A stretch of 64,000 nucleotides of DNA from Octopus sinensis (GCF_006345805.1 NC_043010.1:24862001-24926000), one strand, 5' to 3'. Positions 16,193-46,017 are shown, counted from the stretch's first letter. Made by a program: numbers and translations. The notes: generated from the letters alone by a model not told the origin.

Positions 16193-16321
16193 ATGAATAG
16201 AGGCTTTTTAATTTTTAAATATCTTCGCTATTTATCTTCTCTTTTAATATTGGTATCAAACACTGGATTAATTTCCAAAGCTGAGGAAAGAATGGTAACA
16301 CATATAGGTAATCTTTGCGAG
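16193..16321 (+). CDS. Putative coding exon 1 (signal peptide) of secreted AA15-LPMO-like / Cys-rich / mucin protein
   Basis: ATG at 16193 directly follows a pyrimidine-rich ...TTTTCGCCAG. Translates MNRGFLIFKYLRYLSSLLILVSNTGLISKA-EERMVTHIGNLCE (basic n-region, hydrophobic core, S-K-A cleavage-like site). Ends at a consensus donor GAG|GTGAGT in phase 0, compatible with the exon at 25106. Linkage to the downstream exons is inferred from phase only. Confidence 0.55.
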
Positions 16322-19071
16322 GTGAGTGATCCCTTCATTCTCTTTGTTTGTATCGTTTTATATCGTTGACGTCATGTCTAGAGATGTAGGTTCGCGTCCC
16401 AAGAGCAGTTTTCGCCTTTTTCTACTCCAAAAGGGTTTTTTTTTTAAACCCAATATTTACATGCTATTATTCATACCTTTATTCGTTTGTTGTTACGTTC
16501 TGAGTTCAAATTCCACCGAGATCGACTTTGCCTTTCATCCTTTCGGGGTCGATTAAATAAGTACCAGTTACGCACTGGGGTCGATGTAATTGACTTAATC
16601 CCTTCCCCCAAAATTTGAGGCCTTCTGCTTCCAGTAGAAAGGATTATTTATACCGTTATATCAAAGCAGCGAACTGGTAGAATCGTTAGCACGCTGGACG
16701 ACAAAAATACTCAGTAGCATTTACGTTCTGAGATCAAATTCCGGCGAGGAATTTCTTTTCGGGATCGAGAAATTAAGTACGTTAAACACTGGAGCCGGAA
16801 TAATGGGCTCTCTTCCTTCCCACAATGTTCAGGCCTTTTGTTCAAAATTGAAAGGATTTATAAATTTATGTGCTTCGAGATCCACTGTTCAAAAAAAAAT
16901 CAGTAAATTTTTTGTTGTCTTTCTGATGGTATAACACCACTACCACTACCCCTCTCTTCAACCAACCCCACCAGGTCTTTAGGTGCCTTCCTCTGAACAT
17001 CACCACCACCACATCCTGAAACGCTTTTGTTTTTGGTTTTTACTCCATCCCCTTCGTTACCCTAATCCTTTTAATGGAGCATAAAAATTCAGATCAGACT
17101 ACAACCAGCATCACTCATGATTGCTTTCCCTGTCCACGATATTGGAGTTCGAGATGTTCAGATTGGGAACCACCCGCCTTGTCTCATCCTTTTATAAGGG
17201 CTCAAAGGACCTGTGAAGAATCTTTACAAGGATTTAGGCAGCGGAAATACTGAAGTGTGAACCTAGTGTCACCTTGTGATTACAGTTTGAAAAGCCCATA
17301 ATTCCGGAACTACTCCAACTAGGAAGCGGAAATTTCAAATACACTATTTCTGCATTGCATTGAGTCAGCACACCAAGTATGGTAAAAACTTGAGTAGGCA
17401 TTATGAACCCCCATCACCACTAGAATTTGCAAGATTTGCATCAAAAGTGGTGATTAATTTCTTAAGTTGGGGGTGACATATTTTTCAAATAAAGCAAAAT
17501 AAATATTATGTTGTGACTGGGTATCCAAAAACGAAACAAAATAAATATTAGTTTCCTGATTTTTATAAAGTTATTCATTGAATTATAATATAGGTTATTC
17601 ATTGAATTATAATATAGGTTATTAAAAAAGTCATAATCCTAGTGAAGATAATCCTCTTTCAGCTTTCTCTTGATTAATTTATGAAAAACAAAACAAGAAA
17701 ATCTGGAATAAATTTTTTTAATACGTGAAGCGAAAATACAATTGATGTAATTGTACCAGAGCTACAAGAGTGGAATTTTAGAGTAAGAGACTAGTCGATT
17801 GCATCGATCTCACTGCTTGGCTGGTACTTATTTTATCGATTCCGAAAAGAGGAAAAGCGAGGTCAATCTCGGCGGAATTTGAACTCAGAACGAAATGCCA
17901 CGAAGCAATTTTTTTCAGCGTGCTATCGATTCTGCTAGCTTGCCGACTTTACAGTTAAAAGTAATGTTTAATTTAATTACAATAATCTTTTCTACTCTAG
18001 GCACAAGGCTCGAAATTTTGGGGGAGGGGCCAGTCGAGTAGACCCCAGTACGCAATTGGTGCTTAATTATCAACCCCGAAAGGATGAAAGGTAAAGTCGA
18101 CCTTAATGGGATTTGAACTCAGAACGTAAAGACAGACGAAACACCGCTAAGCATTTCGCCCGGCGTGCTAACGATTCTGCCAGGTCCCCGCCCAACATTT
18201 ACAACTGAAATTGAAATACTGCTTTCAATTTTATTCTGAGTTCAAATCCCGCCGATATCGATTTTATTTTTTTCATTTTATCTTTATTTGGTTGGGGGGA
18301 AGAAACAGCAGGCATAGCCTTTGCAGGGTTTTGAACCTTTTTTCACTTTTTTTTTTTTAATGTGCACCCATGCTAAAAGACGTGTATAGAGAAGAAATTC
18401 CAAATGTTTCGATGTTCTGGGAAAAAACAACTGAGCTCTGGGGATGTTGAGTGCAACAAGGTGGGGTGAGAAAAGGAGAGAAGGACGTGTGGGAAATGTC
18501 TAAGTGGAAGTTGTATGAACACAACCAAATATGAGGAGCAGAAGGCATTATTCTGGCTGTAAGAGTCGTTAGACGGGAATGTTTTACGGTATTTCTTCCG
18601 GTTATTTCTATTCTGAGTTCAAATTCTGCTGAGATCAAATTGGCCGTTCATTCTTCCTGAATCGATAAAATAAAGAGCCAGTCATTTACTGGGGTCTAAA
18701 ATATTGCTGGCATTGTGCCAACATCTGAAACTATCATTGGCTTGCACCTTCCCTCACCTTTAGTAGAAAAAGATTATTATTATTATTATTATTATTATTA
18801 TTATTATTATTATTATTATTATATTCAGGTGGCGAGCTGGCAGAAACGTTAGCGGTATTTCATCCGTCTTTACGTTCTGAGTTCATATTCCGCCAAGGTC
18901 GACTTTGTCTTTCATCTTCTCGGGGTCGATGAAAAGAGTACCAGTCAAGCATTGGGGTCGATGTAATCCACTAGTGTCCTTCCCCACAAATGTTTCAAAG
19001 CCTTGTGTCTAGGGTAGAAGTTATTATTATTATTATTATTATTATTATATTATTATTATTATTATTATTAT

Positions 19072-44600: not shown

Positions 44601-46017
44601 TCCAACAACAACGCCCACAACCACACCAACAACCACACCAACAACCACGCCAACAACCACGCCAACAACAACGCCCACAACAACGCCCACAACCACACCA
44701 ACAACAACACCAACAACAACACCAACAACCACGCCAACAACCACGCTAACAACCACGCCAACAACAACGCCCACAACCACACCAACAACAACACCAACAA
44801 CAACACCAACAACAACTCCAACAACAACGCCCACAACCACACCAACAACAACACCAACAGCAACACCAACAACCACACCAACAACAACGCCCACAACCAC
44901 ACCAACAACAACACCAACAACCACACCAACAACCACACCAACAACAACACCAACAACCACACCAACAACCACGCCAACAACAACACCAACAACCACGCCA
45001 ACAACAACGCCCACAACCACACCAACAACCACACCAACAACAACTCCAACAACAACGCCCACAACCACACCAACAACAACACCAACCACACCAACAACAA
45101 CTCCAACAACAACAACTACACCAACAACCACGCCAACAACAACGCCCACAACCACACCAACAACCACACCAACAACCACCACCAACAACAACCACACCAA
45201 CAACAACACCAAAAACAACTCCAACAACAACACAACAACCACACCAACAACACGCCAACAACAACACCAACAACAACACCAACAACCACACCAACAACCA
45301 CACCAACAACAACAACCAACAACAACTCCAACAACAACACCAACAACCACACCAACAACAACACCAACAACAACTCCAACAACAACACCAACAACCACAC
45401 CAACAACCACGCGAACAACAACACCAACAACAACACCAACAACCACACCAACAACCACACCAACAACAACACCAACAACAACTCCAACAACAACACCAAC
45501 AACCACACCAACAACAACGCCCACAACCACACCAACAACAACGCCCACAACCACACCAACAACCACATCAACAACCACATCAACAACCACACCAACAACA
45601 ACACCAACAACAACACCAACAACCACACCAACAACCACACCAACAACCACAACAACAACAACACCAACAACAACACCAACAACAACTCCAACAACAACAC
45701 TAACAACCACACCAACAACAACGCCCACAACCACACCAACAACAACACTAACAACCACACCAACAACAACGCCCACAACCACACCAACAACAACACCAAC
45801 AACAACTCCAACAACCACACCAACAACAACACCAACAACCACAACACCAAACATCAACGCAGACATTACAACTCCTTCGCCTTTTAAACACCGACCTTAT
45901 CACAAGCAGCGACAATTTCGCAAGCGTCGGCAAGAACGATGCTTTTGCAGAAACCCTCACCTTCGTGTCCATCGTTACTCTTCTGTTGGCAAATGGCGTC
46001 GTCTTCGCTTTGTTTAG
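41633..46017 (+). CDS. Terminal coding exon: last LPMO-like strand (EYVGCIDL), 3 Cys-rich modules, ~1170-aa PTTT mucin repeat, basic tail
   Basis: Acceptor TTTTTTTTTTACTGTAG| at 41632 in phase 1 (G|CG = Ala) matches the 25394 donor. The frame stays open for 4385 nt to TAG at 46015-46017. Variation in the repeat is mostly synonymous (ACA/ACC/ACG/ACT, CCA/CCC). The ORF-track start at 41521 is an artefact of an (AAT)n tract. Confidence 0.85.
41806..42291 (+). repeat. Three 6-cysteine modules C-x8-PG(M/I)xxWCxxNCxxGxCPxxHCxC
   Basis: Copies at 41806-41898 (CYGIYSYVPGINYWCAINCLYGYCPYSHCAC), 41908-42006 (CSVKTDYMIVPGMLEWCYLNCHMGHCPPTHCRC) and 42193-42291 (CSVKPDFIAIPGMVDWCVLNCGLGFCPETHCAC). Confidence 0.9.
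42319..45846 (+). repeat. Coding minisatellite, 12-bp unit (CCA ACA ACA/ACC ACA/ACG) encoding (PTTT)n
   Basis: About 3.5 kb of tandem 12-mers, with recurring higher-order blocks marked by synonymous variants. Confidence 0.97.

Follow-up and report, generated by a model that had tools for sequence, protein, structure and literature searches.

Can an animal lytic polysaccharide monooxygenase (LPMO) that has lost its copper site and half of its fold be kept as part of a secreted mucin? The question is raised by a gene spanning ~30 kb (positions 16193 to 46017) within a 64,000-nucleotide stretch of the Octopus sinensis genome (GCF_006345805.1, NC_043010.1:24862001-24926000), here called the window, in which all positions are counted from the first letter. 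A reading made from the DNA alone (the sequence-only reading) had proposed that three exons encode a secreted protein with an LPMO-like head of the AA15 family, three six-cysteine (6-Cys) modules, a giant Pro/Thr stalk, and a basic tail. Our analysis suggests that this is probably an intact octopod gene for a secreted mucin-like protein built on a noncatalytic AA15 remnant and carrying modules that resemble carbohydrate-binding modules (CBMs). It is the sole member of its family in the window, as a search for further paralogues there found none.

The three coding segments (129, 289, and 4385 nt) join into a single 4803-nt frame of 1600 codons, giving a protein of 1600 aa, with the terminal stop as the only one. 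Both donors fit the consensus (GAG/gtgagt after the codons ...TGC GAG in exon 1 and AGAG/gtaagt after ...AGA G in exon 2), as do the acceptors of exon 2 (ttctgtttcag/ [ttgcttctgtttcag/]) and exon 3 (tttttttttactgtag/CG [ttttcctttttttttttactgtag/]), and the introns lie in phase 0 and then in phase 1. The peptide across the junction of exons 2 and 3 reads CTHCVLQWILKR/AEFSPNAIEKEYVGCIDL. Exon 2 is not able to stand alone, because its frame contains no Met and runs into a stop 20 codons upstream and another 2 codons downstream.

The same gene structure recurs in relatives. When the O. sinensis protein XP_029645183.1 (LOC115219204) was mapped to its locus, exon 1 ended with ...AAC ATT TGC GAG/gtaggt (NICE, phase 0), exon 2 ended with ...AAG CAA A/gtaagt (phase 1), and exon 3 started at acag/GA AAC. 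In the Argonauta hians gene for GAB1603675.1, the corresponding sites are ...TGT CAG/gtaagg (DICQ), ...CGT CAA T/gtacgt, and ttcag/CG TCT. The codon positions and phases (0, 1) of the introns coincide in the three genes, the position of the exon 3 acceptor being homologous and in phase 1 throughout, and the arrangement of exons 2 and 3 is also present in locus L002 and in a tandem Argonauta paralogue. In addition, phmmer matches covered the head and the modules in a single stretch in XP_029645183.1 (E 2.7e-20), GAB1603675.1, and GAB1603672.1.

Exon 1 was the weakest part of the proposed model. The region upstream of exon 2 contains 15 ATG-started, phase 0 open stretches that end at a GTRAG donor, with ~7 distinct donor sites among them. 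Four relatives end exon 1 with N-[IL]-C-[EQN] after a signal-like hydrophobic core, and among the 15 stretches, this end is found only in 16193-16321 and in its longer version from the ATG at 16085. The encoded N terminus resembles a signal peptide, with basic R3, K9, and R12 and the hydrophobic core LSSLLILV, and cleavage is predicted after A30. On this evidence, the three-exon model is well supported: the exons, splice sites, phases, and frame of the sequence-only reading are borne out by the joined translation and by the introns of the relatives, and we read the junction peptide in the same way. We likewise found, as had been reported, that the list of open reading frames (ORFs) contains only the last exon (along with an antisense artifact ORF over the repeat), that the introns are filled with transposons, including ORFs for the reverse transcriptase of long interspersed nuclear elements (LINEs), and that the three 6-Cys modules, the Pro/Thr stalk, and the basic tail are all present.

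The AA15 origin of the head is secure, because a phmmer search of the PDB, an AA15 profile, a six-frame scan, and a profile-profile comparison agree. In the search of all PDB sequences, the only match up to E = 10 was TdAA15A from Thermobia domestica (5msz; E 0.007); no other solved structure was detected by sequence. The aligned part of TdAA15A is residues 78-161, which pair with exon 2 and include the RLC...C and LP..CxxCVLQW elements. As a canonical set, we used 21 AA15 domains extracted from the matches of an exhaustive HMMER search (query, exon 2 through Cys module 2; 1.84 billion representative proteins; 94 matches). This set carries the motifs HG..P..R, CGxCGD, TANH, CxxCVLQW, and QEEFxGCxDI, and the two canonical relatives tested against Pfam LPMO_10 pass with 68-81 bits. 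The profile of the 21 domains scored 30 bits against the window protein, and a search of all of the window's 2452 six-frame fragments with it at full sensitivity matched only the exon 2 fragment (E 2.7e-8, 30.9 bits; runner-up, E 0.34). Absence of LPMO-fold similarity in the peptide of 25106-25394 had been set beforehand as a refutation of the sequence-only reading; similarity to AA15 was found at the sequence level.

The profile-profile comparison extends the homology beyond exon 2. Eight short-head sequences aligned with hhalign to canonical AA15 with a probability of 98.5 % (E 2.1e-15), in an alignment that crosses the exon 2/3 junction, reaches the domain end, pairs mature residues 31-129 with AA15 positions 81-195, and sets EKEYVGCIDL against QEEFYGCSDISI of canonical AA15. 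Tyr151 aligns to the axial Tyr/Phe and Cys154 to the last AA15 cysteine, and the exon 2 peptide (VFSTQ...LPVRLHCTHCVLQWILKR) holds Cys85, Cys98, Cys128, Cys131, and Tyr76. The Pfam model LPMO_10 (PF03067) scored the head at 12.8 bits (cutoff, 23; E 0.19) and covered profile positions 107-183 only. A word-indexed homology search with the TdAA15A fragment returned no candidate. The AlphaFold2 model of the head, made from 26 sequences, is a confident ten-strand beta-sandwich (predicted local distance difference test [pLDDT], 88.4; predicted template modeling score, 0.82).

The head comprises ~125 aa, corresponding to the C-terminal ~60 % of an AA15 domain (canonical length, ~190 aa). In TdAA15A, His1 and His91 coordinate copper, while Tyr24 and Tyr166 flank the binding face (PMC5823890) and were suggested to be possible substrate binders (Sabbadin et al. 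2018, PMC5823890). The window head lacks the first ~65-80 AA15 residues, among them His1 and the Tyr24 segment: the predicted mature N terminus is EERMVTHIGNLCE, with no His as the first residue after the signal peptide, and in the annotated proteins of the relatives, the signal peptide is directly followed by the N[IL]C[EQ] strand. At the position of the second histidine of the brace (His91 in the TANH motif of TdAA15A), three independent alignments place Tyr76, and the same column holds S, T, D, or K in the relatives and is not conserved. Also deleted are a short hairpin and a loop of ~15-17 residues after CVLQW that contains two cysteines (GNxWG...GCxGCGPQ) and the position of Tyr166. The AA15 domain has ten conserved cysteines, and TdAA15A has five disulfides (PMC5823890); six of the ten cysteines are kept (42, 85, 98, 128, 131, and 154).

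We rejected the idea that exons carrying the N-terminal half or the GCGPQ loop had been overlooked, as six-frame regex and profile hunts for them were empty in the window and in four related loci. No HG.[LMIV]..P..R or CGxCGD motif occurs in any frame of the window, AA15 positions 1-90 matched nothing there by motif or profile, and positions 1-78 had no profile match in the four related loci with their 10-kb flanks. Motif and six-frame profile scans also found no AA15-like coding fragment in intron 1.

As both His1 and the second brace histidine are lost, the head would be unable to form the copper histidine brace and is predicted to be noncatalytic. Since all relatives examined lack the same N-terminal half, it is best described as a noncatalytic AA15 remnant. 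A catalytically competent AA15 head on a mucin stalk, oxidizing chitin or docking to it by the substrate face, would fit the significant AA15 homology and the retention of the axial aromatic Tyr151 and of the CxxCVLQW and ExYxxCxD motifs. Against this stand the missing N-terminal residues with their His1, the Tyr at the second histidine, the loss of the Tyr24 and Tyr166 segments, the LPMO_10 score below the cutoff, and the lack of the same half in the related loci; such a head is already contradicted at the level of these residues, and we give it next to no credence. Of the AA15-LPMO-like head proposed earlier, the derivation from AA15 thus stands through the profiles and hhalign, but the catalytic head does not, being a half-domain with no histidine brace. 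Anchoring to chitin through the head, which had also been proposed, is doubtful because residues of the substrate face and the copper site are gone. Because the head represents only the rear half of the fold and both copper-binding histidines are lost, the protein is, judged by its residues, no enzyme but a binding or scaffold protein.

The 6-Cys modules may bind chitin. These modules of ~33 aa have the spacing C-X13/15-C-X3-C-X4-C-X4-C-X-C in the window, and 226 distinct modules among the HMMER matches share the consensus CxxxGxxxxxxGMxxWCxxNCxxGxCPxxxCxC. A profile of these 226 matched modules 1, 2, and 3 of the window protein with E values of 1.6e-9, 3.6e-11, and 9.7e-11, respectively. The modules are found in molluscs, annelids, a nemertean, and a copepod. 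They follow a full AA15 domain in Biomphalaria, Dreissena, Nucella, Ylistrum, and the annelid Paralvinella, and the AA15 domains in front of them are LPMO_10 positive (Pfam E 1e-18 to 1e-22). One module-bearing protein (P0023, from ENA) has a GH18 chitinase domain (E 9e-89), and the copepod protein P0010, the closest arthropod protein that we compared for the modules, has modules alone. In the nemertean Lineus longissimus, protein XP_064622860.1 (P0009) has three 6-Cys modules behind a His-less AA15-like C-terminal half with neither HG nor CGxCGD; here, the brace may have been lost independently outside molluscs. The C-terminal stretch of insect group I LPMO15-1 has been described as "two 6-cysteine internal repeats" (PMC9156745) spaced C-X15-C-X3-C-X6-9-C-X4-C-X-C (PMC9156745); the window modules, which we liken to these by spacing pattern, fit except that four residues instead of 6-9 separate C3 from C4. 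AlphaFold2 modeled module 2 as a small beta-alpha-beta disulfide knot (pLDDT, 88.7).

By analogy with their partners, a carbohydrate-binding role for the modules is the leading hypothesis, and chitin is the leading candidate ligand because the modules follow the catalytic domains of AA15 and GH18 proteins in the manner of CBMs. Gel cross-linking is the main functional rival. In this alternative, the protein is the same, but the modules and the sandwich act like the CysD or other Cys-rich domains of gel-forming mucins in self-association or cross-linking and would hold together a mucus or egg coat network instead of binding chitin. Proteins that consist of little but modules do exist: P0001 (ENA, 1459 aa) has 21 in tandem and no catalytic domain, and P0007 has 4 and almost nothing else. 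Modules have also multiplied in tandem in the octopod family, with five in Argonauta, and the head has lost its LPMO substrate face. On the other hand, the co-occurrence of the modules with chitin-active AA15 and GH18 domains in many phyla is a typical signature of substrate-binding modules, and no vWD, C8, TIL, CK, or other mucin oligomerization domain appeared in a Pfam scan of residues 1-371. We therefore regard cross-linking as a serious but rather doubtful account of the modules.

Most of the protein is the stalk, in which Tandem Repeats Finder counts ~293 copies of a 12-bp unit. Its 1177 codons comprise 845 Thr (72 %) and 278 Pro (24 %). The openness of the frame is no evidence of coding, because stops are rare in every frame of a C/A-rich array; what argues that the stalk is coding, conserved, and under selection is that its variation is synonymous and that an Argonauta relative carries (PTTT)n in frame. 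Counts of G or T are 7, 12, and 125 at the first, second, and third codon positions, respectively. Nine synonymous DNA versions of PTTT make up 234 of the 245 units, and versions that change the amino acid occur at most twice each. In the gene for GAB1603675.1, the exon 3 frame runs through five modules and then through (PTTT)n for >3400 aa within the fetched locus (L003; BAAFZT010000032.1), staying open from 11261 to the locus end (3821 codons). The annotated C terminus of GAB1603675.1 (461 aa) leaves this frame, and a single gene (L003, 10001-22723) appears to underlie both this protein and the pure PTTT model that comes next (7868 aa). A noncoding minisatellite was rejected as an explanation of the array on the grounds of the third-position synonymous variation and the Argonauta array.

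With its long Pro/Thr tandem repeat and its signal-like N terminus, the protein is mucin-like in sequence. The tail that follows has 16 K/R, 4 H, and 2 D/E among its 55 aa, along with 2 Cys and an RKRR motif, and has no hydrophobic anchor. Minus-strand ORFs over the array (41970-45866 and others; up to 1298 aa, Val/Gly rich) are artifacts, as the T/G-rich complement of the PTTT array is stop free. The TTG-started ORF of the ORF track (41521) begins in an intronic Asn-coding microsatellite, the (AAT)n run at 41530-41566, which stops 66 nt before the exon 3 acceptor.

In keeping with a coleoid origin, the closest relatives of the window protein are octopod proteins annotated as "uncharacterized protein" in O. 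sinensis (LOC115219204 [XP_029645183.1] and LOC118765915 [XP_036364626.1]) and as "hypothetical protein" in A. hians (GAB1603672.1 and GAB1603675.1). The two O. sinensis genes are on the same chromosome, separated by ~100 kb, and the Argonauta copies are in tandem. Like the window protein, these short-head proteins have a signal peptide, an exon 1 that ends in N[IL]C[EQN], a truncated sandwich with 6 Cys, and 2-5 modules; their identity to it is 20-35 % in the head and ~40-50 % in the modules. Unlike the window protein, LOC115219204 and LOC118765915 have no stalk. The family gene plan, which the window gene follows, consists of a first exon with the signal peptide and N[IL]C[EQN] in phase 0, a second exon that ends after C..C[VL].[QKI]W[IVLK][ILV][KR]. 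in phase 1, and a third exon that starts with an E/N-x-Y/F/I-x-G/V-C strand. A word-indexed search with the short-head alignment returned only the exon 2 ORF of L002 (P0103), and one with residues 1-276 returned no match; it was the exhaustive HMMER search that revealed the family.

In cephalopod annotation, giant PT-repeat exons and transposon-swollen introns cause genes of this family to be missed, cut short, or divided between models. At the LOC118765915 locus (L005; O. sinensis CM016872.1, 21636-22058 and 27715-28407), the RefSeq model XP_036364626.1 reads through the exon 2 donor and stops, and the true exon 3 lies 6 kb downstream, with its start in a run of N (an assembly gap). This exon encodes two modules 51 % identical to those of the window, no stalk, and a basic tail. 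The window gene itself is unannotated in the protein collection, since an exact look-up of its exon 3 ORFs found them absent. The combination of three modules, a stalk of 1180 aa, and a basic tail was not found in the protein libraries searched, and literature searches on cephalopod AA15, LPMO-mucins, and LPMO proteins of the Argonauta eggcase yielded nothing relevant. The building blocks and the arrangement of AA15, linker, and 6-Cys modules are already known, from molluscs, annelids, and the insect repeats, and in this respect, the claim that the architecture is undescribed does not hold. It does hold, as far as literature searches show, for the octopod family of half-domain pseudo-LPMOs and its giant PTTT members, and the truncated-head form has been annotated only as uncharacterized or hypothetical.

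Several observations weigh against an intact gene for a mucin-like protein on an AA15 remnant. The support for its splicing consists of homology and conserved gene structure, an in-frame ATG lies at 16085, 36 codons upstream of the chosen start, and the N terminus is signal-like by its sequence. The gene may thus be real and its ends wrong, with a start at ATG 16085 or in another 5' exon or with 3' splicing out of the repeat that would make the tail an artifact. Consistent with this, the tail has no detectable homologue (BLASTP against the basic tail of paralogue P0005 gave no alignment), and in the relatives, annotators have divided gene models or cut them short near repeats and assembly gaps. 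A start at 16085 would add a Phe/Leu-rich extension (MHLNVGFGEVYDNFSFLFIFLFFTLHNLFRFRIFAR; window 16085-16192), and we prefer 16193 because the relatives have no such extension. Furthermore, the length, signal-like core, and N[IL]C[EQ] end of exon 1 match those of four relatives, and the paralogue at L005 also ends in a short basic tail within exon 3. We consider misplaced ends unlikely.

Also unfavorable are the lack of a close orthologue (>50 % identity) among the 1.84 billion representative proteins, the fact that two of the three plus-strand frames are mostly stop free across the repeat, and a patch of 48 codons (45172-45315) that slips to N-rich and Q-rich registers before returning to PTTT with the net frame kept. 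The patch may be genuine or may reflect misassembly of the repeat. Together with introns of 8.8 and 16.2 kb full of transposon insertions, these observations would suit a decaying or unexpressed relic, in which exon 2 is the fossil of an AA15 gene disrupted by transposons and the long frame simply results from a stop-free, C/A-rich minisatellite. Such decay is hard to reconcile with three open exons with consensus splice sites, the retention of 6/6 head and 18/18 module cysteines, repeat variation that is overwhelmingly synonymous, and an architecture that is intact, stalk included, in Argonauta. Moreover, the truncated head is a trait of a family of annotated genes and not a local accident. 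A relic is thus very unlikely.

The remaining difficulties concern the folds. A Foldseek search of the PDB with the head model returned generic Ig-like sandwiches (template modeling score, ~0.4; best E, 8e-3), with no LPMO structure in the top 50, and among viral models (BFVD), fusolin and GP37 appeared only at ranks 41 and 43; these comparisons speak neither for nor against the LPMO origin. Pfam scans of the window protein and its relatives found no model for the 6-Cys modules, Foldseek found no structural neighbor of the module model in the PDB, and the proposed binding function of the modules amounts to guilt by association.

We propose the following scenario for the mucin-like protein. The ancestor would have been a gene for an AA15 domain with 6-Cys modules. 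In the octopod lineage, the catalytic domain would then have been shortened by its N-terminal half, including His1, the L2 region, and two disulfides, and the second histidine of the brace and the loop that follows CVLQW would have gone as well. Insertions of LINEs and short interspersed nuclear elements (SINEs) have swollen the introns. The product is most likely a secreted, O-glycosylated mucin with CBM-like modules, its secretion, glycosylation, and ligand being predicted from sequence features. Dense O-glycosylation of the Thr/Pro array in the Golgi would produce an extended bottle-brush rod on the order of 0.3 um long, one end of which would be fixed to a polysaccharide or protein matrix by the disulfide-knotted modules, possibly with the sandwich remnant. 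The basic tail might bind an anionic partner or be clipped at RKRR.

More broadly, and only tentatively, octopods may have turned a chitin-oxidizing AA15 gene into a clustered, fast-evolving family of noncatalytic secreted proteins that keep half an LPMO sandwich and CBM-like 6-Cys modules, with one member acquiring a (PTTT)n rod in each of at least two lineages (the species of the window and Argonauta); these would form an undescribed class of matrix-anchored cephalopod mucins, and the 6-Cys module would be an unrecognized CBM family. If so, the gut or sucker cuticle, the surface of the beak or radula, the egg coat, and the argonaut eggcase are candidate sites of action, and the CBM family would be common to animal AA15 and GH18 enzymes. 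No general principle is changed by the finding. It would nevertheless provide an animal pseudo-LPMO, an AA15 domain with no copper site and half its fold gone, yet kept, duplicated, and fused to mucin repeats, and it bears on the reuse of LPMO scaffolds in noncatalytic roles. The 6-Cys module, which has no solved structure, is in turn a candidate for a new chitin-binding module.

Table 1. Features of the window gene and of the repeats in and around it
Feature	Position	Strand	Remarks
Coding exon 1	16193..16321	+	43 codons, ends in phase 0; includes first 13 mature residues; ends ...GNLCE
Intron 1	16322..25105	+	8784 nt; minus-strand LINE fragment and SINE-like repeats
LINE fragment in intron 1	19234-21771	-	ORFs with RVT_1 (E 1e-31) and zf-RVT
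Coding exon 2	25106..25394	+	289 nt, ends in phase 1; AA15-derived beta-sandwich core
Intron 2	25395..41632	+	16238 nt; reverse-transcriptase ORF, SINE-like copies, microsatellites
Microsatellites (GA)n/(TG)n	25450-25560		Just after exon 2 donor
ORFs in intron 2	35020-38881	+	One with RVT_1 match (E 6e-15) at 36038-36985
Coding exon 3	41633..46017	+	4385 nt including TAG stop; AA15-like end, modules, linkers, stalk, tail
Last AA15-like strand, AEFSPNAIEKEYVGCIDL	41633..41694	+	From hhalign and alignment with QEEFYGCSDISI
6-Cys modules 1 and 2	41806..42006	+	Residues 198-228 and 232-264
Pro/Thr-rich linker between modules 2 and 3	42007..42192	+	62 aa
6-Cys module 3	42193..42291	+	Residues 327-359
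Stalk, (PTTT)n	42313..45849	+	~1180 aa; 12-bp tandem array
Out-of-register patch in stalk	45172..45315	+	48 codons
Basic C-terminal tail	45850..46014	+	55 aa, then TAG
SINE-like copies	16381-16860, 17774-18140, 18611-18991, 22348-22798, 27106-27814, 32263-33103, 46342-46427		Four tandem-spaced copies at 27106-27814

The window contains four LINE-type fragments, all with RVT_1 and two with zf-RVT. Two of them sit inside the introns of the gene (Table 1), and the others are at 3292-5610 and 52862-55358, both on the minus strand. At least 16 copies of a SINE-like repeat (~120-270 bp; 69-93 % identity) are spread over both strands, most of them within the two introns, and the O. sinensis loci L001 and L005 contain copies at 80-91 % identity as well. 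Nucleotide matches between the window and the O. sinensis loci are confined to interspersed repeats. An ARAGORN scan found no tRNA-like part in the SINE-like repeat. An isolated match to 5S rRNA (Rfam RF00001, 101 bits, model positions 1-120 of 120) lies ~13 kb downstream of the gene at 59198-59316 on the minus strand and may represent a 5S gene, a pseudogene, or an element derived from 5S.

How does the window protein compare with known systems? Vertebrate secreted mucins contain proline-, threonine-, and serine-rich (PTS) domains, which are Pro/Thr-rich tandem repeats. The window protein shares with them a kilobase-scale array, 96 % Thr plus Pro, and flanking Cys-rich modules, but it lacks vWD, C8, TIL, CK, and SEA domains, and its repeat unit is only 4 aa long. 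A copper site has reportedly also been lost from an LPMO in fungi, where the "Arg-AA9" proteins attributed to Frandsen et al. in 2019 are said to keep the LPMO fold. By analogy, these would be a parallel to the window head, although the AA9 domain is full length, with a substituted N-terminal residue and no mucin fusion, whereas the window head is a half-domain. Compared with the AA15 structure TdAA15A, the window head has no His1, Tyr24, or Tyr166 segment and a Tyr for His91.

The closest parallels in domain order are the AA15 proteins of group I type. An AA15 domain followed by a Ser/Thr-rich linker and 6-Cys modules is common in molluscs and annelids, and lophotrochozoan counterparts of the window protein (Biomphalaria XP_055868679.1, Dreissena XP_052215367.1, and Paralvinella KAK2167115.1) show the series of AA15, linker, and 6-Cys modules. 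In the insect group I proteins (LPMO15-1, including TcLPMO15-1; PMC9156745), as in the window protein, 6-Cys repeats follow the AA15 part and a linker that is often Ser/Thr rich, and TcLPMO15-1 is needed for turnover of the chitinous cuticle at the molt (PMC9156745). Two differences set the window protein apart. Proteins of group I type have the full AA15 domain of ~190 aa, with HG..P..R, CGxCGD, TANH, and a passing LPMO_10 score, whereas the window protein is without the catalytic half. In addition, its giant repeat follows the modules instead of lying between the head and the modules, where the group I-type linkers are placed.

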